A stretch of DNA of 63,849 nucleotides, counting the filler, from Choristocarpus tenellus KU-1152 (Eukaryota; Protista; Phaeophyceae), in assembly GCA_964200185.2 (NCBI GenBank). It is 11 parts of 11 records of this genome, joined end to end, with 100 filler letters (N's around TTAATTAATTAA, not from the genome) between each part and the next. Parts side by side here need not be neighbours in the genome. Positions count along the whole stretch, not along the records: positions 8,772 to 25,930 come from CAXNAD020000714.1; 10 more parts are not named here. One strand, given 5' to 3'. The notes beneath the pieces were generated by a model. That model searched no databases, was not told the DNA's origin, and saw nothing but the letters and a program-made list of their open reading frames with translations. Numbering within the stretch: position 1 is the stretch's first letter; each line of letters opens with the position of its first letter. Of this stretch, positions 8,772 through 25,930 are shown piece by piece. A program made the translations under genes and the position numbers.

Positions 8772-11700
8772 GTAGACCGCTGTGTCTTTTGCATGGGGCG
8801 CCGCCGTCCATCCTCCCTTGCCACCTGATCCTCTCCCATCGACACATCACCACTAACACTCCCCACACCCCTCTCCCCTGGTCCCTCCCCTGCCGCAACC
8901 ATTACTCTCTTGGACCTGAGCAGCGCTTCCCTCGCTGAGAACATGACTGGATTGAGGACGCCGAGCCCCGCAAGCTTCTGGGGATTGCTTGTGAGAGTGG
9001 CTGAAAACAGCATCTTTCTCAGTGGCGGAGTGGACACCGTGGGTCCTCGGACTCGGGCCCCAGTTGCCAGGGGGCGCCCCCGAATTGTCACAGGCTCAAG
9101 TTGAATCCCAGAGGGAAATTGGAAAGGGGAGGGTTTATTACTGCGAGGGGAAGCTGTTTTGTGTGTATCTTCAGTCTTTGCATCAGAATGGGCAAGAGCA
9201 AGGGCAGGGGTCGAGAAGAGCTGTAGGTCTCCATTAACCACCCGAGAGACGGATCCAGGCTCTCTCCTAGAGCATGTCAAGCCATAGGTGGGAAAAAAAA
9301 GGGTCAAGAGGAACAGTTTAAAAAGTGAGAACAAAACAAAGAAATATATATATCAGTGTCAGGCAATGGAGGGATAGAGGTCCAATACAAGGGGGGATAC
9401 AGGATCTCATCGCCTTAGCTTCAACAAAGCACACTGAAGTACACTTATAGGTCAAAACCTGTCCCTCAACTAACCACTCCCTTCACCTGTAGGACGCAGC
9501 CAAGACTTTCCCCACCCAGCCCTGGTAGCTCTGGTTCAGTAGTCGATCTGCCTCATCAATGACAAGGTATCGGAGATGCTGCAGGGTGAAGCCTGGAGTC
9601 TGTGAAAGGTGGTCCATGAGTCTCCCTGGTGTAGCTACCACAATGTCCACCTGGGACAAAAGAATAACAACAAGGTGCAGGAAACGGAGCATGGTTGGAA
9701 TGGGACGGGAAAAGGAGATAGAGATATAATGCACTGAAGGTACATTCCAAAAGAACATCAACAGAGAAACGGCGTCCCACGTTGCCATCACTCCCCGAAC
9801 TGACAAAGAACCTTGTCCAACAGTCTAAATTCATCCACACACATCCTCCAAGCCAAAAAAGATTACAACAGCAAACACAGCCTCCAAAAATCTCTTGTAG
9901 CCCTCAACCACCTTTAGGCACACCAACCACATCGACCAAAAGCATGTCCTGAAGAGGCTGGGCTAGTTGGGCTCATTCACCTCACTAGCTCCCCCGGATG
10001 GAACTGATGTGGAATTCCCTGTCAAGCTGGGCCCTTGCCAAGAGACAGCTCCAGTCCCCCGAAGGGAACATGCTCTTGCAGCAGCCACAGGGTTTCCTGG
10101 AGAGATAAGGGGAGATGGTCAAAGGCTATTGGTTGGACGAAAGACAAGGGAGGGAAAGTGAAGGGGAAGGTGGGGATAGAAATGATGTCTAGATATTACA
10201 GCAGGTGAGGGTTCCTAGCTATCCTATCGAGTGAACCATGACACAAGCATTGCGGGATAAGCAGCGTTGTGGGAATGGAGCACATACACCACATCACAAT
10301 CTGATTGTTTAAACGAGCACAGGCCCACATTGAGTCGGCTTCTCCCTTGCAAGAGACACCTAGACAAGTCTGTTAATCATCCACACAGACTGCGAACCTC
10401 TACCTGCAAGAGCAAACCTCCCTACTAAGGATAGCTGTTCCTCCAAGAAGTTGGTCTGTCCAATGGCAAGCCCTACCCTGAGGCCAGTTCGTTCTGCATA
10501 CCGCTGAAAGACCTTGTGCACCTGCATAGCCAGGTCACGAGAAGGGAGAAGGACCAGTGCACGCAAGCGAACAACTCGCCTGCGCATAAGAGCCTGTGCG
10601 GGGAGGTGCAAGGAAGCGGCAGGGTGTTGTTGTCCTTTGTTGCATGCAGTTGATTTTAGGCCTGCAGTCAGCATCAGATACAAAATGTGCCACCAGTGTC
10701 AAGATCAAAAGTCCCTCATATCTCTGCGGGAATGACAACCCGCAAATGGATGCACCCATCCCATTGATTGTAGGGTTTCCTAAGTCAGCACTTCTAGCAA
10801 AGGATAAGGCTGGCCTGGACACTTAGTCATTGATTGCCATGATCGAAACAACGAGCCTCAAAAGAACTGAGTTTGGCAAATATTTGTATGTCTGCCAGAT
10901 TCCTAGGGTATTCACATAGGCTGCCATTAAACCTAGCCCTAGCCCGAAAGGAAACCTAGAGCTAGGTCATTCAATACAAAGTAATTTGACAGACACTTTC
11001 ATACCCAAAATCGCTACCCGAAAAACAGACACCTGGAGCACACCAAGAACGTAGACCAGCGTCTTGCCACTCCCAGTTGGAGCTGACACACAGATGTCCC
11101 TGCTCTGTACATGAGAGTGGCGTTCAGTTGCAACAATTTCCGGAACCACACGAACCTGATGGGATGGTAAGGATTTTAATTTTCAACTTGGGTAATATGG
11201 GGTGGGAATAACCAACACACCGATTCACAACATTATACGAAGGTGCTGGCGTTAGCGCCGTAAGATTCATCCCTTCAAATTCCTTTCCTATACCTGAATA
11301 GGGAAGAAGTGCTTCACTCCCTCCTCTCTGAGAGTCTGCGCAAGCCTTGCATCCAACCCCCACTCTTTTGCAACCTCTTCCATTGGGCGGCTGCCGTCTC
11401 CCTCCTCTTCGAAGTCCTCATCCTCCTCATGATGCCCTTGTCCTCCTCTATCCCCTTCATTGGCGCTATGAGCAACTGATGCTAAACTCTGCTGGTTCGA
11501 AACAACGCCATCTTCACCTTTGGAGCACTCTTCCTCCTCAACCTCCCCCTGGTCGTGGTCGTAAGGGTCTATGACCTTCTGAACAGAGAACAGCTCGGAT
11601 AGTGATGTGAGAGGACGATCTTCTCCGGGCCCCGAACTCGCTTCGCTTTCTGAATCCTCCTCGGAAGAAGCTGACAACTCATCCTTGGGCTCTTTCAACG

Positions 11701-11884
11701 CGTTGGTGTTGACCTTGTCGATGCCACTACCCTCTGTGTCACACCGTCCCTGCTTCACCATTGCTCTTGCTTTGGCACGCTTCAGGATGCTTTCCAGCGC
11801 CCTTTTCCTGGATCCTTTCGATTCATCGGCTGTTGATGATTCTTCTTCCTCGCCCCCAGCATTCCAACGCTCGACCTTGAACAT
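8772..11884 (-). CDS. DDX51: DEAD-box RNA helicase DDX51/Dbp6, 5' part; exons 11884-11294, 11155-11033, 10593-10404, 10096-9981, 9650-9487, 9266-(8772)
   Basis: Q motif FFPIQ, motif [14 protein letters not shown], Ia [13 protein letters not shown], Ib [31 protein letters not shown] and [20 protein letters not shown], a set typical of DDX51/Dbp6. All splice sites are GT-AG and in phase. The RecA2 half is lost at the linker. Confidence 0.92.
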
Positions 11885-12063
11885 CGTTACACTCTTGTCT
11901 CACTTAGAGATTGAACCAACAACTTCATGAGAGGTGACCAACAAAGGGTCTATAAAGCGTTTGTTGGCGTCGGTGCAACCTCCACTCCATCACCCTGTCC
12001 TATTTATAAGAATGTAGTGCAAGTGAACAGTAGAGACCAACCACATTCCGACGGTTCGAAAAA
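11885..12063. promoter_or_regulatory. Putative bidirectional promoter between DDX51 and the RbcX-like gene
   Basis: Only 179 bp separate the divergent ATGs at 11884 and 12064; TATAAA lies at ~11951. Confidence 0.45.
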
Positions 12064-14493
12064 ATGGTGAAGGGTATTGCGCCTTCAGTCCTCGAACCAA
12101 GAGATCGGGAACGGAGATGGTGGTCTCTGACCGCGATTTTTCTCCTGTTGGCTCGTAGCAGTTATGTCGTTTCCTTCCGTTGCCACCCTTGCCAACGTCG
12201 ATCGTCAATCATTTCTGTTCACTCCCTCCAAAGCCGCGTTCACCATCGACCACGTGTCCTGTACATGAAGGAGAAATCTTCCAGTGATGCCGAAAAAGAA
12301 TTCTGTGACGGAAGACTCAACGACTTGATCACAATACAGGCGCAGCTGACCGCAACGCACTACTGGATGGAACTCCGAGGTGCAAGGCCTCGACCCGACA
12401 TGTGGTCGTCTGTCACTCTTGCCTGCCCTTCCGATCATGCCCTCGGTATCAGAACGCGATTCTCCTGTTCAAGAACCTCCTTCGCTCACTCTAGCCGCCC
12501 GTTGACCACCAGGCAACATGTACGCAGAATGGATGTCCCGATACAACAAGGAGGTGGGAGGAGTGCAAGCCTTGGGCTGGAAATCTTTTCTTGGTGGTAT
12601 GCTCCGTGCTCCTCCCGAGGAAATCGTGGTAAAGAAGTTGATCAAGAAACCCAGAGGCGGATCGGGTACCAACCCGTTCTTGAAGGACAGGTGATAGGGG
12701 GACATCAAAAAGGACAGAGTATGACGTGATCCAAGCCTTGGCGTAACGCTCGGAGCGATGGTGGAAGCCGCAAAAAATACCTCACAATAATTAGTGCGCT
12801 TAGTGTGGAAGCATTCGGTTTCCGGTTCATGGGCCCATATACTCATTTTTTCCTTCACGTGATGGTTGCCCTCGCAGGGAGTTTTCATATACAGAGATAA
12901 TTTATCCAGCTAAAATCGCCCAGCAGATCATGAGTATCAGAGAGCAATTGGCAGAGCACCTTGGCAAGGACCTAGAGCTGGTGGTACAAGAAAATGCAGA
13001 GCTCAAACGCCACTACAATGATGAGGTAATTTAGGTGACTCCTCCTGCTATGGAAGGAAGAATAGTAGCACAAAGTGTCGAATGAGGCAGGGTTGATGAA
13101 TATGGATTCATCCAACATAGTCTTGAAGACAATATAATCCCGTATGGCCTGATAACTCTCGCTTCGCATACCGTTTTTCTACGATATTATTGTTTCCACT
13201 CATGGAGTGTTTGTGGTGTTGCTTTGATATTCAAGCTTAAGCTGGAAAGTAATCTCAAGTATTAATAGAAAAAAATCATTTTATCTATCACAGTAGAAGC
13301 CAATGCCAAGGGCTATTATCACTGGGTATACAAGCCACTACTACAGCTGTGTGACACTGAGATTTTTCCTCTGCATTCCCTTAAAAATGCTTGTTACCAT
13401 CTGAAGCTTGAGCTTGGTGCAGACAAGGCATTGCGATTGCGGATGACTAACTGGACTGTTAGGCAGGAGCGGGATCCATCTTCTGGAATTTCCAACCCAC
13501 CTCGGAGGGTAGCAGCATATGATAAAGCTGTGGAGGTGCGGGAAGCTCTGTTTCATGGCCGATGTGCTTGTTAGTTGTATGCTAGTCCTCCTGTCCGTTG
13601 GAGACCAATCAGTGATGCGAGCAAGAACTTCATCCTTCCACTCCCAATTCCAAATAACACTGCCATTTCCCTAGGCTGGAAAAAGATCAAACTTTTTTTA
13701 TAACACTGCAATGAAGCCATCAACTTCCTGAGCAAGTATACCCCTCTCAATCCCACCTCAATTAGGAAAGCGTTGGTTGCGTTATTGCATAGATGATCAT
13801 GCCTTTGACAACTGGCATCCCTTCCTGCCACCCTCAGCTCATCACAGCTTCAAGTGTGAGACGATTGCAAAAGCAACTCCAAGTACATGGGGACAGGCAC
13901 ACACTGTCCTGGCTCGAAAAATTGTGCAATGAAGAGCTTGAGAAGAGGTATGCCCATGCATTCCTATAGTGGACTGAATGTTTGCTCTATTGCTAGTGCC
14001 ATTTGTGTGCACTGTCAAGGGTATGGTATAGAGTATCTGCCCCGCCACATATTTCACCTCCGCTATACACACCTCTTCTAATTTGTGCTGAAGTCACCCT
14101 CTATTTTTGCCTGTTGCCTAAAGCATCTCTCCACAGGGCTGTGTTAGGGCTGAAAAGGCATCCCCTTTTCAATGTGATAACTTGGTCCTCGATCTGATTC
14201 ACATTATGTGTCCACCTTATTGTCCGAGCAGACAAGGAAACGAGCTGATCAAGGCAATTCTTGAGGGCCCCATAGTCCTGGTCAACAAGCCTGGCCGTGA
14301 CACTAAAATAATTGAACCTTTGAAGGTAGCACAAGCCATCATGCAGTTTAGGGAGGAGGTGGCAGAGGAGTGCATCGAAGTGTTGGCAAGTGTGCCCCAG
14401 GACCACAACCAGCTCACTGTCTCACTACTGAACGAGCAGTGGAAGATGACGCCCTTTGATTTTGACTTGCGTGGTGAGGATGATGGCATGTGA
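12064..14493 (+). CDS. Plastid-targeted protein with two tandem RbcX-like domains, 380 aa; exons 12064-12379, 12513-12690, 12878-13025, 13407-13535, 13838-13947, 14232-14493
   Basis: Six GT-AG exons sum to 1143 nt in one frame. A hydrophobic signal ending VVS|F is followed by an S/R-rich transit-like peptide. Repeat 1: LNDLITIQAQLTATHYWMEL..EWMSRY..WKSFLGGML..PAKIAQQIMSIREQLAEHL..ENAELKRHY. Repeat 2: AVELITASSVRRLQKQL..SWLEKL..GNELIKAIL..PLKVAQAIMQFREEVAEECIE. Both resemble cyanobacterial RbcX (LTYQAVRTV..WL..F..P-x-LA-x-RIM-x-VREHIAEE). Confidence 0.8.
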
Positions 14494-17400
14494 TACGACA
14501 TTTACAGGACCTTACAGTCCAATAATTGGTTGGGTGGACCGTGTGCTTCTCTGGGTTTTTTTTTAGCCAAACCAGATGGCAATTGTGTATATGGTGCTTA
14601 AAGTGTGAGTTTTGCACAGACACTGAAACTTGTGCATAGGAATAGTCTCAAGGGGAATGACATCACCTGTGTAGGTATGAATTGAAGAGTCATATTTTTG
14701 GTTGTTATTTTTTTTATTAACCGTTAAATTTCAAGACTATTGAAGATGCCATCCCTGCTCATTCTGAACTACCAAGTATTTATCTTGTGTCTCTATTAGT
14801 AGTGGAAGAACTGCTTGCTTGTCTTTCATTTCACTGTACTGAAGAATCACGAGGTTTGATCCTCCCATGCCTTCGACTATCTCTTTCAGGCTTGCAAGAC
14901 CCAACATGTGCCCGACCAATCCACCCTGTGCCTCAAAGTCATTCCATTATGAGGATTTGCACTAGTCATCATTTAGGTTTGGACAGTGCAAAATGTTTGT
15001 CAAAAGAATTGTTGAAACCCTTTCCAAGATGAAACGAGATGAGAAAATGGAGCCTGTGGTCAGCTCTACTAAACATCTCCATACGCTTTTGGTGTAATGA
15101 TTTCAGTTGCATGTACTCCGGAGTGTGCAAGGGGTTTTTGATATGGATGAGGTTTTGGAATTTTTTTTATCTGATTCGATCTGTGTTGAGACAGCTTTGA
15201 AATGTGACAGGCACCTCTACACCAATCGTGTTGGATTGATTGTGATTGACTGATTAGCTGCTATGATGAGAGGTACTAGTCCCTCTACTTGAATTCAGCT
15301 CCGACAACTGCAGACTATGAGCTCAGAGGATACAAAAGTGTGCTGGCGCTGGTGGTCCTCAATGAAGCGCACTTTTCTCCAGTAGCTAGTAGCTAGATCT
15401 ACCATGTTTGAAGGTGACAGCTGATAGATATACAGCAGGGCAGATAAGTGTGTGACTCATAGGGGACAACTGCTTGCGTGCTCAAAGCCATTAACTCGCA
15501 TACTCACACATGAGCATGACATATTAACTGTGTTAAAGAGCAACATGATGGGCTATATCCCATTATCTCTGTAAGGGTTGTCTGGCGGGCACATGTAGGA
15601 ACTAGCTTTATACCAGATAACAAAGTCCTGGCTGTGCTAGTTGGCAGTCCTGACATGTTAGAGCTCTGCCCTTCTGCTGAGATACCGTAGTGTTCCATGA
15701 TGATGTGAAATCCACCTTGAATCTACTCCAATTTTCATCTGAAATGGTGACGTCTACCATCTCAAGTCCTCTGCATATTGGTAGAAGTGGATCATTGTGT
15801 CCATGTACAGCAAACTACTTGCTACTGTAGTCTTCCAGGGTGTGAAGGCTTGTTATTTTTATTGTCATACATCGGGATATATTTCTCCAAATGTTACTCA
15901 TCTTACATAAAATTTTCCTAGGAATCCAACGCAGAAATCCGTTTTGAAATCGGAGGTCATCCGGAAGAGGTACATGCATAAAGGAACAGACTTACGGGAC
16001 AGAGGGGGTATTAGTCTGCGGGATCCCAGACCTGTGGTCGAAAATATAGTCCGAAGAAGGCAATACACGCTGGTTGAGAAAAGGCAACAAGGACCACAAA
16101 AGAAAAAAATGAAGCAATGGAAGAAAAAGAACTTAGAAGGAAGAATATAACCCAAACGAGAAAGACACCATCGCCCATGACAGCTTACACGTGGCTCATC
16201 AAGTGCATGAGTCAAGCTACAAAATATTGAGTCGGTGTGGGATGTGATCTAACAGTGAAACCTCTCTGGAGTAGTAGTAATCATCATGAAAAACATCCTC
16301 AGGCGACCCCCTAAATATGTTTACTCTTAAGTATCTATCAATATTTGTGCACAGTAACTGTAGTACGGTTCCGAGTAACTGGTACTTCTCAAGGCAACTT
16401 GAGAGCATGTACTGCTAGAACTCTATTTGATTTGGGGTTTGTTGGTTTCATGATCGAATTATTACATACTCGGGATTTTATCCTGTAGTATTCAGTACAT
16501 CTGTAAACATGTTGGTGGAGGTGCGAACATCGTTGAGTAGTATGGAATACACAAAAAAGCGATGGTGGAGTGATAGGTGGTCACTCATTCACATTGTATT
16601 AATAATTTAATACCTTTGTTTAGTTATTCAAAACCTGTGTTCAGTCCAAGCTCAGCATCACAACTTCAACATTGTAACTATATTGACGGATACAAGATAC
16701 CAACAACTTGTGGAAGGGCTCTTTCACTAGCTCAGTCCGGTGGTCTCAATTTCACTATATATTGGCAATCTAACTTGAAACAATATTGTACAGATATGGC
16801 TAACCTGGGATGATACTGCAAATGAGGTCATGGTGATAGCCCACCCCCACAACGTCACTGTCTGCTAAAAAAAATGTGGTGGGTAGTTTCTCAATTGAGA
16901 TAAGGTGAGTTTACTTTGATCCTCGAAAATCCTAAAAAGGTTGTGTATCTATGTTCATTTAAGGCGAACCTACAATTTTGAAGGTAAACAGAACAATGCC
17001 CAAACACCCCCCTCCTCCTTTGGCATTGGTAATTGAGAATACTCTTAGATTGCTGGTACAGAAAAGTGAAGGTACGATAAATGTATAGGGTTAGGGTTAG
17101 GCTTATTTGTATACTTCATGTACATAGGAAGAATGTACGTACTAATATTGGTGCTGAAGCACACCTACCTAGAATACATAGGCAATGGTGATCACTGATT
17201 CCACAGGTTAGTTGATAGTATCGATACTGCAACTAGCACCAGTAGATACTCATCACTCCAGAGCAGCACACTCAGAGAGTGTGCAGCTGACAGCTACTGA
17301 TGTGTGTGCTGCATAACTAATAGGATAGTCGACATATATTTGCTGTGTTGGGACTAAAATATTTGTGTTAACACAGTAAGGTATCAATAGAATGATGAGT

Positions 17401-17555
17401 ACAAACGCCGATTTTCAGTGCGCTCCTAATCAAGGTACTAGAAGTGATTTGTACCTCCAGAGTGTATCTTGTGGATTTTGGAACCACTGCAGCAGAGGGG
17501 AGAAAGAAAAAAATAATAACACCAACACCGCAATGGAAAATGCGTATATATTGTA

Positions 17556-17735
17556 GGCTCAAAGTATCTGGGGAGGGGGGGGGTTCTACACCAGGGTGTC
17601 CATTTGGGCCCTGACCAGGAAAATTGCGCTTATATTATCCATCCGATGCATGCAACCAAATCACACAAAATCGCGACATGGAAAAAATTGTCCCCAAATG
17701 GACAGCCCCTATGCGCCCCCCAGATACTTTGAGCC
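17556..17735. mobile_element. Family-A MITE, 180 bp, TSD TGTA
   Basis: Perfect TIR GGCTCAAAGTATCTGGGG / CCCCAGATACTTTGAGCC with TGTA on both sides. Confidence 0.9.
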
Positions 17736-18241
17736 TGTACTCGCTGGAAAGGTTGTATAATACATACCAAGTTGGGGTAGCGTGCCAGTTGCTTCTCAGA
17801 TCCCACTGACCCAGCTGCCAGTAATCACCAACAGGAAGTAAGCACGAAACATACTGGAAAATGTAATGTATTCTTTGTAATCAGTCATATTTTCCATCAT
17901 ATATCGTGGCATACTTACGTACTACCAGGAAATATTATTGTAAAGCAAAACTCATCGCCCAGCAAATGAAACCCACTGTACACTACCTCTATGTGTTCTG
18001 CACTTGGGTATACCAGACTATTCCGTACTCCACGATTTTTGGCATTGAAACAACACATGCTCCGGATGTTGTATTTGTTCCTACAGCGACCTGAGGTTGC
18101 TCTGGACCAAACCTAGTAACTTCGCCATATTTTTGCCAGCATGAGTAAAAATCTATTCATATCAGGATTGTGTTCCCTTGCAACATCAATATCTCTGAAT
18201 GGAAGGGAATTCCAATCACGAGATCACAAGTTAGACAATCG

Positions 18242-20225
18242 TCATGACACAATAGTGGTGGTGGTGTGTTTGTCAAGTGTGTCCTCAAACTGTCCAGGGT
18301 TGAGTTTTTTCCGAAATGTGAAAGCCCATGACTTGGCGCTCTCCCTATCCTGTTTGACAACACCACCAAAGTCAAACTTCTTGAGGTTGGGAAAGGTGTG
18401 AAGGATGTAGTTGCGGTAGTGCTTGTTCTCAGTGACAGGATTCCCATGGAGGGTGATACTCCTAAGATGTGTAAGGTGTGAGGCCAAGCTCTTCAGTCCG
18501 AAAATTGTGTCAATACAGTTTCCATGGAGATTTAGCACTCGAAGTTCCTCAAATGGTTCGAGAACCTGCCCAAATAGCAAAACTAGTTTCGTAAGAAGAG
18601 GATGTCATAGGACAAGGTTTGAACAGTGTTGGTCAAGCAGAATAGTTTGAAAGGAAAATCTCCCAGGAGAGGTAGACCAGTAGCACCTAATTTCATCCTT
18701 TCACAATGGTAGTCTCAATGCCTAAGAGTAGTATATTGAAGGTATTTGTTGCTCAAGCTCAACAGTTATTCTTTTGCTGATACCGACCAGAGGGGATTCA
18801 GTGAACATACCTTCCCCTGTGCAATACAATGTGACCAAAAGCATTGAAGAGGGTAAGGGCCGCATCCATTTGGGGTCATGAATCCAATGTTGTTACTTTG
18901 ATGGATTTTGGCTATCGTCATTGTCACCAAGTGTCACTATCCTTGCTTCAATATCGTATACATTTTAGGTAACTGTGTTCACACAGAAAACCGAAAAAGA
19001 GCATTAAAAAACATTGGAAGTCAAGCCCCAAACAGACAAACAAGGCAAATCTCCTACCCTCTTAAATGCTTTGACTCATGTGTTCCAGTAACTTTGAGGA
19101 AGCAAAGTAGTTGCAGAGTGGAAATATGACATAAAGTCAGTGGAGTTGGGGGAGATTGCAGGCCAGGGACATCTTTCTTGCGCATTTAACATTTAGGGGA
19201 TTTTGTTGGAATGAATGCTGCTTTGTCTGCGACCCCTGATCTCAGCCCTGGTACATACTTGAAAACTCTCGACAATCCTAGCAGCAAACCACTTCCTATT
19301 CTGCTTCTGAAAACAGCATTGGCAATGTTGAACAGTCTAACCTCTGTGTAAGTTCGCTGCTAGATGGAACCTGTTTTTCGCTTACCAAATCGTCTTTAGG
19401 GAGTAAGGTGCTAGGGTGATGATATGCAGTACGCATTAACAGACCTTTGGCTCGGTCTGAGAGGTCAACAATTAAGCCGAATGTGTCGTCGTATCAAAAT
19501 TTCTCGAATAAACCGGATCAACAATAAACCTGGCTACTCCACAAGGGTTGACCTATTGTTTGCTATTGCAGCATTTCCCCTTTCTACACCAACACCGTAT
19601 CAAAGCCTACCTTCTTGATGTTTTCTATGCGATTGCATGACAGGTCGATCCATTGGATTTTCCTCACGTCACACACCACCTCTCCCACCACCTCGGCCAG
19701 ACCTGTTAGGTCCCGCAGCTCATTTCCCTGTAGCCTCAATGCAGTCAGCTTCAACGGGTCGACTTTTCCCTCCTCCACAATCACCGCTTCGCGAATATCT
19801 GCGTGACACGAGACAGAGCCAGCTTGTTTTCGGCACATTGAACGTGACGATGGAGGAAAGAGCATTCGACAAAGTATACATTGACCGACAACGATCAAGG
19901 TAAGGAGCAACCTCATTCATTCACTTTCGGCATTTCTTGTAAGGAAGAGGAGAGGAGAGGAGAGACTCAACCTAAAACAGCTCGTGAATTTCTTGGATAA
20001 GGCTTCGTTCGCTGACCTTGCAATATGCAACAAGGTGATACATCCTTAGGAATAGTAATACGAGAGGAGGATGGAACTCGGCACAGTTGTGAGATGAGAG
20101 AAGTCCATGAGATGTATTTCCGTCCTTGCTCTGGACCAGTATGAGGCAGAAACATAAGACCTACCATCAATTTCTCTCAGATCCACATAGGATATATCCA
20201 AGACGTTCTTCCCAAAGAAGGACAT
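18242..20225 (-). CDS. LRRC51: Leucine-rich repeat protein LRRC51 (190 aa); exons 20225-20165, 19798-19611, 18565-18242
   Basis: MSFFGKNVLDISY..ALRLQGNEL..QWIDLSCNRI..VLNLHGNCI..LRSITLHGNPVTENKHYRNYILHTFPNLKKFDFGGVVKQDRESAKSW matches LRRC51 motifs and length. Splice phases are consistent. Confidence 0.88.
18833..19077. mobile_element. Family-C MITE in an LRRC51 intron, TSD ATGT
   Basis: TIR GACCAAAAGCATTGAAGAGGGTA / TACCCTCTTAAATGCTTTGACTC; homologous to the copies at 22858 and 29061. Confidence 0.8.
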
Positions 20226-20737
20226 CGATTGCTCTGCTGGTTGTTAGGACAGCGTTGCACCCCAAACCCTGCAAAGGATAGAATTGCTCGTCAAAATAAG
20301 CCTTTCACGACCAGAAATCAGACATCACATCACTGTATTTTCATGCTAGATGCCCAAAGATATATACTATATCAAGTATAGTAGGAAATGTGAAACCTAT
20401 TTAGGTTATTATTGCGGTTACGAATCAAAATATGAATTTATAGTAGAATGGTACTATTATATTAATATAAGAGTAGTTTGAGGTATTGTTTAATGGACTA
20501 GGTGTGGTGCTAAAGTGTTCATGTTGAAGCAAATAAGAAGTAGGTTTACTGGACAGCAACTCCCCAAGTTTCTGGGAGTACCCCCAATCATGTTAATTAT
20601 TCTAACACTAACACTAATAATCCAAACAAAATCTTTTAGATAAGAGCAAATATGAGGGGTGTCCCTATAAATCTGGGCACCTACTTTTCCAGTGTATCTC
20701 TTGCCAATAAAAATGTTGTGATGTTATACATGGAAAA

Positions 20738-20739
20738 AC

Positions 20740-20775
<36 letters not shown>

Positions 20776-20866
20776 GGTGGTAGTAATAGTAATAGTAGTA
20801 GTAGTAGTGGTGGTGGTGGTAGTAATAGTAGTAGTACAGCAGCGGCAGTAGCAGCAGCAGCAGTAA
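20738..20866. repeat. Compound trinucleotide microsatellite (GTA/GTG/GCA)n
   Basis: Visible directly in the sequence. Confidence 0.9.
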
Positions 20867-22857
20867 GTAGCCGTAGCAAGTATACAGCGGCACGTAATAT
20901 TGTTCACTTACTATTATGTGTGTACTATTTGCACTTAATACTTCAAAGTATGAAATGTGTATGGTACAATTCTGTGGGGGTGGAATGGACCTCTCTAGGC
21001 ATCGAATGCTCTATACTAATGGAAGGGAGTGCCGATTCGTGCTGTGACCGTTGGTTACCTATCTACTACAACAAGTATATACTTGTTGTAAGTAGCTGAA
21101 AGATAATTGTATTGATTGGTAGTACAAGTTCAACATCATATGCAAGAAAAGGACTGGTTATTTCGACTAGATAACTATATTTATATTCATCTCGTTCTTC
21201 CCTGTGTAGTAGGTGCGATCCATATACTTGTAATTACATGTGTATATATATTACATACTTTATCACTAAGAGTATATTTTTATTACTATAAACATTGATA
21301 GTAACGCATCCCATCGAAGGCTTATTGGGGTGGATCGACGTGGTAAGAAGGATCTTCAAGGAAATTATAAAGGACCGCATTTACTTCTGAAGTTTGTACA
21401 TGACTAACCATAAGCACAAAAACCAAGTTATTATGGTGGTGCTAAATTCTGTTTTGTATATTGTTGTACATGCTCGCAGTCAGGTACTAGAATAGAGAAA
21501 TTGGATATACACAAGCAAGATTGCCTATACAGATTATTAAGAAGTATCCACAGCATAAGATATATATATATACATGTAATATTCCTGTTAGTTCCTTCCG
21601 AATGACTGTCCCTTTCTTTCCCAATTACATGCATACTACTCAGCATAATAATTTCAACTGTGTTCTCTCCACCCTTACCACTGCTGCCATACAATACATG
21701 TCATCTCACTAATCAAACGACACCTTCCTCACAATACCCAGCATCTTTCGGACATTTTGAATTATTTTCTGACAGTATGATCACACATGATTTAGTGATA
21801 CTAGGTGTTGTATAGAACTCGATCCTTCCACTCACTGCTGATCGTAAATTTCTCAAGGCAAAAGATTTCACGTTGCATTTTTTTTCTCGAGAAGGATCAC
21901 ACAATTAGTACCCTTCTAAATTTCCTGCTACTATAAATTACACTTGAATATAGTGTACGTGGTAGCTACAGTTGCATTGATCATGGATGAAGAAATATAC
22001 GCGAAGAAAATAACAGGTATACCTACAACAACTATCGAGGAAATCATGCTATCTTAGAGGGAGGTATCATTGAGTATTTAAGGCCACTACTGTGACTACG
22101 TTCTGATTCGCATGCTTCTAGTACTCCGGAGTCCGATTTTCCTGCTCCTATTGATGGAAATCAGTCCCCTCTTTCACAGCAGCAGACCCCTGAGGTGCGC
22201 TAGCTGCATCTCAGGCATGGAAGATAGGATATTATATATATAATAGTCAGGCAGAAGATAACAAAAGTTCGAAAAATGGTCAAAATAGTCACCCCTCTAA
22301 GGATGGCTCTGGAGAGCTCTGTGTTATGGTGGCCTGGTTTTTCCTTTCATTGGTTGAAGGTTGTCCTCAAACAAAAAGAGTGTCATTGTACCAAAAGGAA
22401 ATGGTAGTACCACATTGGCATGCATTCCTATACGGAAGATATTCTGCAAGATGTGCCCCAGATTCAACCGACTTCTCAAACTCTGAGTCTGAGCCGAAGA
22501 GTGCCAAAATCGCACATCCTTCTCACGCCCACTTACACCCAAAATTTGTTAACTAAGATTTTTGCATGGCGTTCTACGTAATATAGTATGAGAATGAGGT
22601 ACTTGAGTTTACAATTATCCTGGAGTACTTTGAAAATATTTCCATACAGAGTCAAATCAGGGTTTTGGGGGACTGAAAAACAACGACAATACAACATCGT
22701 GTTGCATTCAACTCAATCAAGTCCTTGCTGAATGTTAATTGAACTCGAGCAATGGTTATAAACAAGTTTGGCAACTCTGATGCTGAATTAGCAACAAACT
22801 GGATGCCTACAGTAGCGGGAAAAAAACACGAATCTACAATATCTATCTATCCCACCT

Positions 22858-23112
22858 GAGTCAAATTATTTAAGAGGGCAGGGTCGCGTCCACTTGGGGT
22901 TCAAAATCCAATGTTGCGATTTTGATGGAATCTTGACTATCGTGTTTGTTAGCAAGTGTCGATATCCTCGTTCTGGACACATCTTTCATAGTCATACACA
23001 TTTCAAGTAACTGTCTTCACGCAGAAAACCGAAAAAGAGCAAACCATAGGAAGCCAAGCCCCGAACGGACAAGCAGGGCAAACCTCCTACCCCCTCTTAA
23101 ATGCTTTGGGTG
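22858..23112. mobile_element. Family-C MITE, TSD ACCT
   Basis: GAGTCAAATTATTTAAGAGGG..CCCTCTTAAATGCTTTGGGTG flanked by ACCT. Confidence 0.8.
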
Positions 23113-23499
23113 ACCTCGTGTGTGCACCGTGATGGAGTGCGACTTGCCTTCTTCGTCCACAGACTATGACAAAGCAGCATGAACAGCAAACTTCTAACTC
23201 CCTCAAATGTTCACTTCTGTACCCTGCGCCAACCTGGGTATGGAGATACAGACCAGCCACCCAACAGTCATACTGGATATATACATACATGTAATCTTGC
23301 GAAATTATTTGCAGAGCCCTATCCTAGTATCACCCATGAACTTCTGCATATCACATTTTTTGCTATCCATACCACCAACTGCGCCAAGTACATGTACTGA
23401 GTAGTAGAACAATTGTAACTACATATTTCCTCACAATATACAAGGTGCTCTTTGGTCGCTTTTGCACACTGCATGCTTGAAACGTTGTAACCACCGTGT

Positions 23500-23780
23500 G
23501 AGATCACCGAGATGGAATAAGGCAGCTAGCATATATTGTAAAACGACCGGAAGATGATGAGCGAACTCCCAAGATCTTTCCTGAAGTTTGGGAAGTTTGT
23601 GGGTAGCAAAAGAATAACCGGTGGTGGGCAGAAGAATTAGTGAACGTCTCTCACTGATGAGTATCGCCCTTTCGAAGATCCCATTCGAGGGCTGACGCGG
23701 GTGTGCAGAAAACCAAAGCAAATGGGAAGACTGTTCTATGGAGCCCAGCATTTCATCGACAACCGACAAAAAATGGAGAT
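23500..23780 (+). pseudogene. Possible decayed 3' end of an RTE-type LINE
   Basis: Broken frames give HIVKRPEDDERTPKIF..CAENQSKW, reminiscent of the RTE C-terminal GHV-RM-D-R-PK..W..A-R-W pattern. The match is weak. Confidence 0.25.
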
Positions 23781-24918
23781 TGTCGAGCCCACAACCTGCC
23801 ATGCTGAAGTGGGCATGGCTGCCAGCAAGACCTTGCTAGTGCTTGCTCAAAATGATTTTGGGCCTGAAATTTGGTGCCATAAGTTGTGGAGAACTCATGG
23901 TTAGACCTACCTTCCTTGATGCTGGAGATGACGCTTGTTCCTGATATTACTCTATGGTTTTTGGACATGTCTTAATGAACTTATTCTCCCCGGCCATAGA
24001 TTACTATTTTTTTATCCCTCTGAAACACTTGAGCTTGGTAATTATGGAACCTTCTCTGTCCATATAGATCTCTCCCTGTGGGTCCTGCACCTTGGGAAAA
24101 TGGACCTTGTATACTGGTGATGGTGTTTGCTGTGTGTGGTTCTAATTGGAGTATATTTTCCCTTACTTTATAATAACCTTCCTTTTATGTCTCAAGTTTC
24201 TCCCTTTTCCTCCACTACTTATTTTTCTTCTCTCTCTTAGTTATCTCGTTCTCTTCATACCGTGGGTACAGCGTATCTGTCTTCCTTCTTATGTCTCTCT
24301 GTACTCGAGCTGCCTTTTTGGCTACAAGTCCGTTTAGACGAGACATAAAACGTGTAATAATAGCTTACTAGCCCCACTGTAGAACAATGTTTCACGGTGA
24401 TTCCCTGAACATATTATGTTGTTGACTAAGAAAGTATCAAGGTCAATATTTTCAAATGTTGAACATTTTGTGTTCTTGTGGGTAAGCCTAGTATGCGTAA
24501 CATTAATTGTAGTACCTGTGGAGGGACAGAATGGATAATGTGATACACGGTTATCTCCAGGTTTCTCCACATACTTACAATTCAAATCTAGAAGGTGGCA
24601 TAAAAAAGCATATCAAGCAGTGTAATCTATTCGAGCAAAGCAATACACACTCGACATAAACATAAGTGCTGCCGTAGGCTAGTGTGTAGGCTCTCGCATG
24701 GAGTGGTGGCAGTGTTGTCTATTTAACTGACACTTTCCCTAAAAATATCAAGGCTCATCATGAAGTATAATACAGCATAATGATGGGCAATACACGAAAG
24801 TGAACAACAGGAAGAACACCATTTTAAGTTCCACATGGGATGTACTAAGCCCAGTATAAATGTAGCTGACTCCTGTACCTTCTACAAAAAAACATTAGGC
24901 TCTCCATCTAATGCCTGA

Positions 24919-25930
24919 TTAGTGATTTCTACCTACATGCATTTGAGTTTTCAAGACCGGCCCATGATAATCTGGCACAATCTGGGGGATGATCGTCCCA
25001 AGAATATTGAGGCAGTCTACAATTCTCTCAATATTCCTACTCTTGAGTAAGTCTGATGACTTGAAGAGTCTGTCCTCAGGAAGCCCCAGGACTCTACACG
25101 AACACAGGAAGGCATTCAAGTTTGCTGCCCGTGCCTTGCTATTGGTGTTCAACTCGGCACATAGTTGGAAGCCTGGATGAATCCGGTTCATCAAACATAC
25201 AAGAATATGCCCATCCTCTAGCCATCCAATGAAGTCAGACGGGCAATGTTGCTTTGTAACAGCCTCAATCCAAGTCCTGACTCGTGCTTCTGCCTTCTCC
25301 AGGTTAGGTGGTTGGGGAGGGCACAAAGGTACATGGCAGACAGCACTCAACCAGTTATTGCCACCCATTACCAGCCCTTGCTTAGGACCCTTCTTATCAA
25401 CCAACACACCACAACTCGTCGACCGCCCAAGGTTTCCACCTTGCATGTCACAACTCTGAAACGGCATATGGTTGCTGTAGAAGTCTATCTTTGACTGTTG
25501 CAGTGAGGAGAGTTCTCCATGTTGTGCTGCTGAGAACAGGTTTTTGCGATTCCCCAGCCGGATCTTGTTTTCCCGCTGTGGAGATTGGGTTGGTTCTGAA
25601 GATGTTATGGGTTGGTTAGATAGGTACTTGCGCATTTCCTTTACCTTCTTGCCATACCTTGTCATATTAGTAAATGATGACCTGCGGCTATATCTACTTG
25701 ATCCAACGTGCGGACGTAGGTGTGGACGGGGTGGACTCGAGGAACATGGTCGTTGAGGCTCTCCAGGGCATATTGGAGGACCGTCCACTCCAAGTGCGGG
25801 TACGGGAGTGTCTGATAAGGCTTTGTCAGATGTGGGTATGGGAGTGTCTGATAAGGCTTTGTCAGATGTGGGTATGGGAGTGTCTGATAAGGCTTTGTCA
25901 GATGTGGGTATGGGAGTGTCTGATAAGGCT
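24919..25930 (-). CDS. C-terminal part of a protein with a calponin-type CH domain, preceded by a 12-aa tandem repeat; 5' end truncated at the linker
   Basis: EARVRTWIEAVT..FIGWLEDGHILVCLMNRIHPG..NLNAFLCSCRVLGLPEDRLFKSSDLLKSRNIERIVDCLNILG is a CH domain. The frame stays open from the linker through the TPIPTSDKALSD repeats. Confidence 0.82.
25795..25930. repeat. 36-bp tandem minisatellite (GTGGGTATGGGAGTGTCTGATAAGGCTTTGTCAGAT), at least 3.8 copies
   Basis: Near-identical units running into the linker. Confidence 0.92.

Follow-up and report, generated by a model that had tools for sequence, protein, structure and literature searches.

Choristocarpus tenellus is an early-branching brown alga, and one locus in the genome of strain KU-1152 (assembly GCA_964200185.2) raises the question of what a protein with the fold of the homodimeric chaperone RbcX would do in an organism whose Rubisco is, to judge from its subunit genes, of the red form ID. 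We examined this locus within a stretch of 63,849 nucleotides (nt; referred to here as the window) composed of 11 parts of 11 records joined end to end; coordinates are window positions unless stated otherwise. The gene occupies positions 12064–14493 of the plus strand, on contig CAXNAD020000714.1 (C714; window 8772–25930). An initial annotation, made from the sequence, had described its product as a single-chain tandem RbcX-like protein targeted to a complex plastid. We find that the gene is expressed and that its product is predicted to carry two diverged RbcX-fold domains on one chain. A role for this protein in the assembly or stabilisation of Rubisco would follow from fold-level homology, and we assign it a probability of roughly 0.5.

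The gene model derives from contigs of three public runs on positions 11900–14700. Run X3 is not on record as RNA, but it yielded spliced contigs all the same. These contigs skip five stretches, each bounded by GT and AG, and the exons that remain sum to 1143 nt, corresponding to 380 codons and a stop when translated from the coordinates. The shorter side of the joint comprises 26–28 letters at four of the joints and 110 at joint 13947/14232. The depth of X3 is about 80–230 over the exons and about 9–48 over the introns, as expected for RNA plus some pre-mRNA. Run X1 gave a single unspliced genomic contig across the locus and is probably the source DNA. The translated model matches letter for letter the public protein P0001, which is recorded for Choristocarpus tenellus as an "unnamed protein product". 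In the six-frame list of open reading frames (ORFs) for the plus strand of 12064–14493, the gene appears as fragments only. The spliced contigs and the identity to P0001 thus uphold the complete six-exon, 380-residue gene that had been read through the fragmented ORF track, with all five of its joints present in transcripts. The coding region is organised as follows.

12064–14493, plus strand: complete coding sequence of the tandem RbcX-like gene, six exons, 380 amino acids and a stop (spliced contigs, translation, identity to P0001).
12064–12379, plus strand: exon 1, residues 1–105 plus 1 nt, encoding the putative signal peptide, the transit-like region and the start of helix 1 of repeat 1; joint 12379/12513, GT..AG.
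12513–12690, plus strand: exon 2, joints in spliced contigs.
12878–13025, plus strand: exon 3, encoding the second strand of the repeat 1 hairpin and the helix 4 that comes after it (IAQQIMSIREQLAE; R186 invariant).
13407–13535, plus strand: exon 4, end of repeat 1, linker (residues 218–247) and start of repeat 2.
13838–13947, plus strand: exon 5, joints in spliced contigs.
14232–14493, plus strand: exon 6 with the stop codon; joint 13947/14232 on a 1390-nt contig.
12380–12512, 12691–12877, 13026–13406, 13536–13837 and 13948–14231, plus strand: introns 1–5, all GT..AG, from the contigs of run X3.

Orthologues align over the exon junctions, save that this protein has one additional residue, Q295, where exons 5 and 6 meet. 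We rejected an alternative acceptor by which this extra glutamine would be lost; it breaks the reading frame, and the RNA contig backs the acceptor at 14232. Run X3 also contains unspliced contigs at 12351–12540, 12662–12904, 12996–13434 and 13506–13865, covering every intron but the last at a lower depth of 9–48, against about 100–230; they may represent pre-mRNA, retained introns or carried-over DNA.

Does the product have the RbcX fold? The full-length AlphaFold2 model has a mean predicted local distance difference test score (pLDDT) of 80.8, exceeding 90 over most of both repeats, and a predicted template-modelling score (pTM) of 0.71; repeat 1 modelled alone has a pLDDT of 87.7. When the full-length model was compared with 48,161 PDB representatives without a prefilter, the five RbcX chains took ranks 1–5 (3q20_B, Z = 11.6; 2peo_A, 4gr2_B and 4gr6_B, Z = 10.8 each; 5bs2_A, Z = 9.4), followed by matches at Z = 8.0 and 6.4, with the RbcX alignments falling mostly on repeat 2 (residues 242–372). 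Repeat 1 alone, compared with the same 48,161 chains, placed the same five RbcX chains at the top (Z = 11.5–9.1; next match, 6.2). In both searches the RbcX alignments span 100–116 residues of chains that are 105–118 residues long. Of these, 4gr2 and 4gr6 are Arabidopsis RbcX1 and RbcX2, and 5bs2 is Chlamydomonas RbcX-IIa. Foldseek E-values all exceeded 0.2, and Foldseek probability and target template-modelling score (TM), together with VIA-align, were used instead; the cyanobacterial RbcX chains were matched with a probability of 0.80–0.97 (target TM 0.56–0.67) and Arabidopsis RbcX1 with a probability of 0.44 (target TM 0.45). Each repeat is modelled with helices 1–4 in the RbcX order, helix 1 being long, helix 3 short and helix 4 long and kinked, with a hairpin in addition.

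Database searches were made with single exons and then with the full-length record P0001, which the exon 6 search had returned. A profile of the family, compared with 177,635 PDB sequences, gave RbcX as its four best matches (E = 0.0025–0.02), in register with both repeats. Separate profiles of repeat 1 and repeat 2 each put RbcX first in the PDB, all profile E-values lying between 0.0025 and 0.04. Pfam RbcX (PF02341) is the only Pfam family matched by many members (11 of 19 at E ≤ 1). Its gathering threshold is 27 bits, which P0001 does not reach; among the relatives, P0007 exceeds it with 28.7 bits, P0010 has 24.6 and P0002 20.7, and the orthologue P0030 has a precomputed PF02341 match. An exon-by-exon Pfam scan and a phmmer search of the PDB with exon 6 gave no RbcX match, the domain being divided among exons and too diverged. 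The sequence evidence for RbcX is therefore weak but consistent, and the structural evidence is strong; RbcX chains head both the structure searches and the profile searches, in agreement with the RbcX-like character proposed for both repeats.

The protein-level features that follow from the models and the alignments are these.

12274–13415, plus strand: repeat 1, a predicted RbcX-fold domain with an inserted beta-hairpin (residues 71–217, exons 1–4; model, PDB search, profile matches).
13506–14448, plus strand: repeat 2, a predicted RbcX-fold domain with a short hairpin at residues 309–321 (residues 248–366, exons 4–6; full-length model, PDB search, profile matches).
12644–12878, plus strand: loop KKPRGGSGTNPFLKDR, forming the tip of the hairpin in repeat 1 (residues 150–165, the last codon split by intron 2; conservation).

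The two repeats are related to each other. When the two halves are aligned locally with each other the score is 73, where shuffled sequences give 28.7 ± 4.5 (z about 9.9), and hhalign aligns a repeat 1 profile (residues 76–218) with a repeat 2 profile (residues 244–368), each built from 18–19 family members, over 105 columns with a probability of 98.3% (E = 2.5e-14). The sole large gap in this alignment is the loop KKPRGGSGTNPFLKDR, present in repeat 1 only. Both the duplication and the extra loop had been recognised in the initial annotation, and both are confirmed here. A beta-hairpin is inserted between helices 3 and 4 of each repeat (residues 141–173 in repeat 1, 309–321 in repeat 2), and the loop at the tip of the first carries the family motif P-R-G-G-S-G-x-N-P-[YF]-L, the most conserved element of the family: N159, P160 and L162 are invariant in 19 of 19 members, and G155 and S156 are near-invariant. 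The loop has a pLDDT of 57–74 in the predicted models, as is typical of a flexible segment such as a binding loop. A linker of about 30 residues (218–247) separates the repeats, with P246, R248 and Y252 conserved in the linker region; T260, W282, P323 and R334 are invariant in repeat 2. In P0008 and P0012, members of a paralogue clade described below (clade C), a far longer acidic insertion takes the place of the GGSGxNPYL loop, so the loop is not universal among the paralogues.

Cyanobacterial RbcX holds the two C-terminal phenylalanines of RbcL with Y17 and Y20, and its Q29, E32 and R70 are peripheral polar residues that touch the neighbouring RbcL. An approximate mapping of RbcX residues (Synechococcus PCC 7002 numbering) onto the two repeats gives the following.

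T19 (core): Thr in 14 of 18 members in repeat 1 and in 19 of 19 in repeat 2.
W40 (core): Trp in 17 of 19 members in repeat 1 and in 19 of 19 in repeat 2.
R75 (core): Arg in 19 of 19 members in both repeats.
Y17 (groove): L88 in repeat 1 and L258 in repeat 2; Leu in most members in both repeats.
Y20 (groove): I91 in repeat 1 and A261 in repeat 2; variable in both.
E32 (peripheral): Glu in 16 of 18 members in repeat 1; not kept in repeat 2.
R70 (peripheral): Arg or Lys in 16 of 19 members in repeat 1, Gln181 in this protein; not kept in repeat 2.
Q29 (peripheral): Tyr in repeat 1; Gln270 here in repeat 2, Glu in most members.

The helix-4 pattern A-x-x-I-M-x-x-R-E-x-x-A-E is kept along with the core. 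The two halves are clearly not equivalent, since repeat 1 alone retains the loop and has counterparts of E32 and R70. Of the asymmetric pseudo-dimer groove that the initial annotation had envisaged, the asymmetry is thus borne out at the residue level, carried by the GGSGxNPYL loop and the E32 and R70 equivalents; any peptide groove would differ from the canonical one, the tyrosines of which are replaced. With these tyrosines lost, the protein is not to be filed as a plain RbcX, and its sequence suggests that it may recognise RbcL differently or have another client.

Two N-terminal features precede repeat 1 (↓ marks a candidate cleavage site).

12064–12174, plus strand: putative signal peptide (residues 1–37), with a hydrophobic core at residues 21–30 and candidate sites SS↓Y after residue 33 or VVS↓F after residue 37 (heuristic scan).
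12175–12273, plus strand: transit-peptide-like region (residues 38–70), rich in Ser, Arg and His, with no acidic residue until residue 70 and a pLDDT below 50.

These signals come from a heuristic scan of our own making, set against ASAFAP-type features. The Kyte-Doolittle maximum is 2.46, at residues 21–30, within a predicted helix spanning residues 13–36. The 25 residues past the first candidate site (after residue 33) include 6 Ser/Thr, 4 Arg/Lys and no Asp/Glu, and the model shows this stretch as disordered. In the 11 members whose N-termini are complete, [AGS]↓[FYL] comes after a hydrophobic core; the sites aligned in brown-algal orthologues are SA↓F, SA↓Y and RA↓F, and the candidate sites of more distant members read LA↓F, RG↓F, HA↓F, EG↓F, FS↓F and TG↓L. 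Stromal proteins of red complex plastids characteristically have an aromatic residue at the +1 position behind a signal peptide. On these sequence features, import of the tandem protein into the red-derived plastid with its four membranes, by way of a signal peptide and a transit peptide, is most likely; the scan and the orthologue N-termini bear out the bipartite, transit-like N-terminus (VVS↓F) claimed at the outset.

The Rubisco that the protein would meet there is encoded in the plastid of the same assembly, where rbcL (488 residues) is followed directly by rbcS (139 residues; locus L007, G000:C1:101332-105249). The host RbcL scores about 875–970 bits against diatom and Galdieria form ID structures and about 660 bits or less against green-type chains, from which we assign the host Rubisco to red form ID; a red-lineage form ID host, as the initial annotation had assumed, is thus supported by the rbcL-rbcS operon of this brown alga. 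The C-terminus of RbcL, WKDITFEYTSTD..., contains WKDITFEY and retains the I-x-F-x-aromatic element. Its counterpart in green-type RbcL, EIKFEF, is the element clamped by RbcX. There is no rbcX between the genes of the plastid operon, and a six-frame search of the 164-Mb assembly, of low sensitivity across introns, found no canonical PF02341 gene; because of the introns, this null result is weak evidence. Downstream of rbcL-rbcS, on the opposite strand, lies an ORF that by eye resembles a photosystem II D1-type protein.

The tandem gene belongs to a family. An exhaustive search with exon 6 gave 28 proteins, and most of the longer ones (216–416 residues) have two matched stretches. The named members belong to Scytosiphon, Ascophyllum, Ectocarpus, Undaria, Cladosiphon, Nemacystus, Discosporangium, Chrysoparadoxa, Tribonema, Vaucheria and Fibrocapsa. 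Maximum-likelihood analysis gave rise to a clade A (support 99/95) comprising P0001, other brown algae, Chrysoparadoxa A and Tribonema A; a clade B (85/91) comprising Cladosiphon B, Chrysoparadoxa B, Fibrocapsa and one metagenome sequence; and a clade C comprising Tribonema C and one more relative; further clades fall outside A–C. On this tree, ochrophytes thus have three or more old paralogue clades, and the fusion is older than these clades, since all members have the two-repeat layout. Choristocarpus also has a clade-B copy, partly seen on a short contig (G000:C21239, loci L001-L003), the exons of which are 56–73% identical to the Cladosiphon clade-B protein P0006.

Word-based protein searches returned close relatives only (9, 10 and 1 matches), and the diatom and rhodophyte leads come from ESM Atlas clusters alone. 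One mostly diatom cluster of 414 residues superposes on the whole model over 328 residues with a root-mean-square deviation of 3.1 Å (TM 0.77/0.71). Single-domain RbcX-like clusters of 165–213 residues carry mostly Bacillariophyta or Rhodophyta labels, and single RbcX-like domains may therefore occur in the red lineage too, although some of these clusters could be fragments of tandem genes. In a diatom cluster of 168 residues, 53% of the members have PF02341. Taken together, the family is conserved in brown algae and their xanthophyte, raphidophyte and Chrysoparadoxa relatives, and probably in diatoms.

How might such a protein act? The reading we favour is that of an ATP-independent chaperone that would assemble or stabilise the plastid-encoded form ID RbcL. 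The mature part, from about residue 71 to residue 380, comprises two predicted RbcX-fold domains on one chain, so that one chain would supply what the RbcX homodimer supplies with two. The two repeats would pack against each other as an intramolecular pseudo-dimer, as suggested by the pTM of 0.71, by a helix-4 kink that appears in the full-length model only and not in repeat 1 modelled alone, and by the agreement with the Atlas diatom model. The C-terminal WKDITFEY of RbcL would probably be held by the tandem protein. Because the groove tyrosines are replaced, and because the loop and the E32 and R70 equivalents are confined to repeat 1, binding would be asymmetric and chemically unlike that of cyanobacterial RbcX. 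A more specific version, which we put forward tentatively, is that the family is the dedicated assembly factor of eukaryotic form ID Rubisco, an asymmetric single-chain descendant of RbcX that would clamp ITFEY while its GGSGxNPYL loop docked on RbcL or temporarily filled the later site of the RbcS hairpin.

Several points weigh against a Rubisco role. It is drawn from homology at the level of the fold, and the pseudo-dimer packing is a suggestion from models. P0001 has no match to PF02341 at E ≤ 1, and the profile E-values against the PDB are marginal. The residue mapping is approximate because it is based on weak HMMER alignments, and both groove tyrosines, Y17 and Y20, are replaced in both repeats (L88/I91 and L258/A261). 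The hairpin of the red-type RbcS has been described as making RbcX dispensable (PMC9833100). Finally, X3 coverage is first seen at 12114, so that the ATG at 12064 lies outside the RNA contigs. This start of coverage, 50 nt past the proposed ATG, is what would be seen if the N-terminus were mis-modelled and translation began at Met68 to give a cytosolic protein, which we consider very improbable: contig ends lose low-coverage termini, a transcript from 12114 has two out-of-frame upstream ATGs (12117 and 12164), and aligned signal peptides with ASA↓F-type sites are present in brown-algal and other orthologues. The alignment of the brown-algal N-terminal signal peptides supports the ATG at 12064. 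HMMER E-values of only 0.0025–0.04, and the fact that helical models often reach Z scores of 8–13 with unrelated bundles, might likewise suggest a chance similarity of helical bundles unrelated to RbcX. We reject this explanation. All five RbcX representatives, and no other chains, head both of two independent searches, and the next match lies clearly below them; the matches are near full-chain (100–116 of 105–118 residues); the profiles independently rank RbcX first in the same register; and one member exceeds the PF02341 cut-off, with ten more matching below it.

The remaining alternatives accept the RbcX fold and differ in what it would be used for. A repurposed fold, serving as a plastid factor for a non-Rubisco client (another plastid-encoded subunit, or a component of import or biogenesis), would fit the loss of the canonical groove tyrosines from both repeats, the conservation above all else of a loop that has no counterpart in RbcX, the existence of at least three old paralogue clades, which suggest diversified clients, and the report that red-type Rubisco does not need RbcX (PMC9833100). 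Against such repurposing, no strong structural match other than RbcX chains was obtained, the host RbcL retains the element recognised by RbcX (ITFEY, compared with IKFEF), and none of the data point to another client. RbcL binding is also, to our knowledge, the sole biochemical activity of the RbcX fold, and we regard a change of client as possible but doubtful. The protein could instead associate with Rubisco without being a chaperone, as a component or tether of a pyrenoid or condensate; the RbcX-like protein of Ulva provides a precedent from a green seaweed (bioRxiv 10.64898/2026.07.16.738900). The flexible, conserved loop could serve as a Rubisco-binding sticker, but there is one copy of it per protein and so no multivalency, and orthologues are present in Ascophyllum and Undaria. 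The orders of these two algae, the Fucales and the Laminariales, are without pyrenoids, which argues against a pyrenoid-specific function and leaves this alternative improbable.

The surroundings of the gene on C714 contain the following features.

8772–11884, minus strand: DEAD-box helicase gene of several exons, running off the edge of the piece and divergent from the RbcX-like gene.
9483–9806 and 10360–10683: ORFs with Pfam DEAD matches.
18242–19916, minus strand: exons of a leucine-rich-repeat protein (Pfam LRR_9, E = 1.2e-11).
20740–20836: (AGT)n microsatellite, 32 copies.
24919–25788, minus strand: long exon of a calponin-homology (CH) domain protein (PF00307, E = 1.6e-09).
25798–25930: 36-bp tandem repeat at the contig edge, 3.7 copies with 98% matches.

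The first ATG of the helicase gene, at 11884, is about 180 bp from that of the RbcX-like gene, and because the divergent ATGs are so close, a shared bidirectional promoter is probable. The 36-bp tandem repeat may explain why the assembly ends where it does.

The enzymes of best CO2 specificity are found among the form ID Rubiscos. The failure of all attempts to assemble form ID Rubisco in plants or E. coli has been attributed to unknown chaperones, by which heterologous assembly is probably blocked, and RbcX and other green assembly factors have been described as having no homologues in red-type organisms (PMC9833100). Our models indicate that an RbcX-fold protein does exist in organisms with red-type Rubisco that are said to lack RbcX. 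In the full-text literature, which mostly excludes subscription journals so that a prior description is possible, we found no paper on an RbcX-type protein in a red-lineage alga. The gene is a concrete and inexpensive candidate for heterologous Rubisco expression trials and for knock-outs in Ectocarpus or in diatoms that can be transformed. If the family were indeed the dedicated form ID factor, assembly of the Rubisco of diatoms, brown algae or red algae in E. coli or in the chloroplasts of crops would become possible once the factor was supplied, possibly with its paralogues. As a natural single-chain form of a homodimeric chaperone, it also lets one ask how symmetry breaking alters client recognition.

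Cyanobacterial RbcX (PF02341; PDB 2peo, 3q20, 2pem, 2py8) shares with each predicted repeat the topology of helices 1–4, including the long kinked helix 4, and has in common with both the T19, W40 and R75 equivalents and the helix-4 motif. It is a chain of about 110–155 residues that acts as a homodimer, whereas the tandem protein comprises two diverged copies in 380 residues, to which it adds a hairpin per repeat, the GGSGxNPYL loop in repeat 1 and a putative bipartite plastid signal. The cyanobacterial gene often lies in an rbcL-X-S operon with form IB Rubisco; the tandem gene is nuclear, contains introns and belongs to a form ID host. The RbcX proteins of the green lineage (Arabidopsis RbcX1 and RbcX2, Chlamydomonas RbcX-IIa) are likewise nuclear-encoded, plastid-targeted and of the RbcX fold, and the structural match to them is as strong as that to the cyanobacterial chains (Z = 9.1–11.5), but they are single-domain homodimers that work with form IB Rubisco and have simple transit peptides. 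We know of no description of a tandem fusion or a hairpin insertion in green-lineage RbcX. The closest parallel among seaweeds, likened here by its description, is the RbcX-like protein UM003_0241 of Ulva, which is pyrenoid-localised and has a C-terminal Rubisco-binding motif (bioRxiv 10.64898/2026.07.16.738900). Like the Choristocarpus protein it combines an RbcX domain with a short element that possibly contacts Rubisco; it differs in belonging to the green lineage, in having a single RbcX domain and in carrying its motif at the C-terminus.

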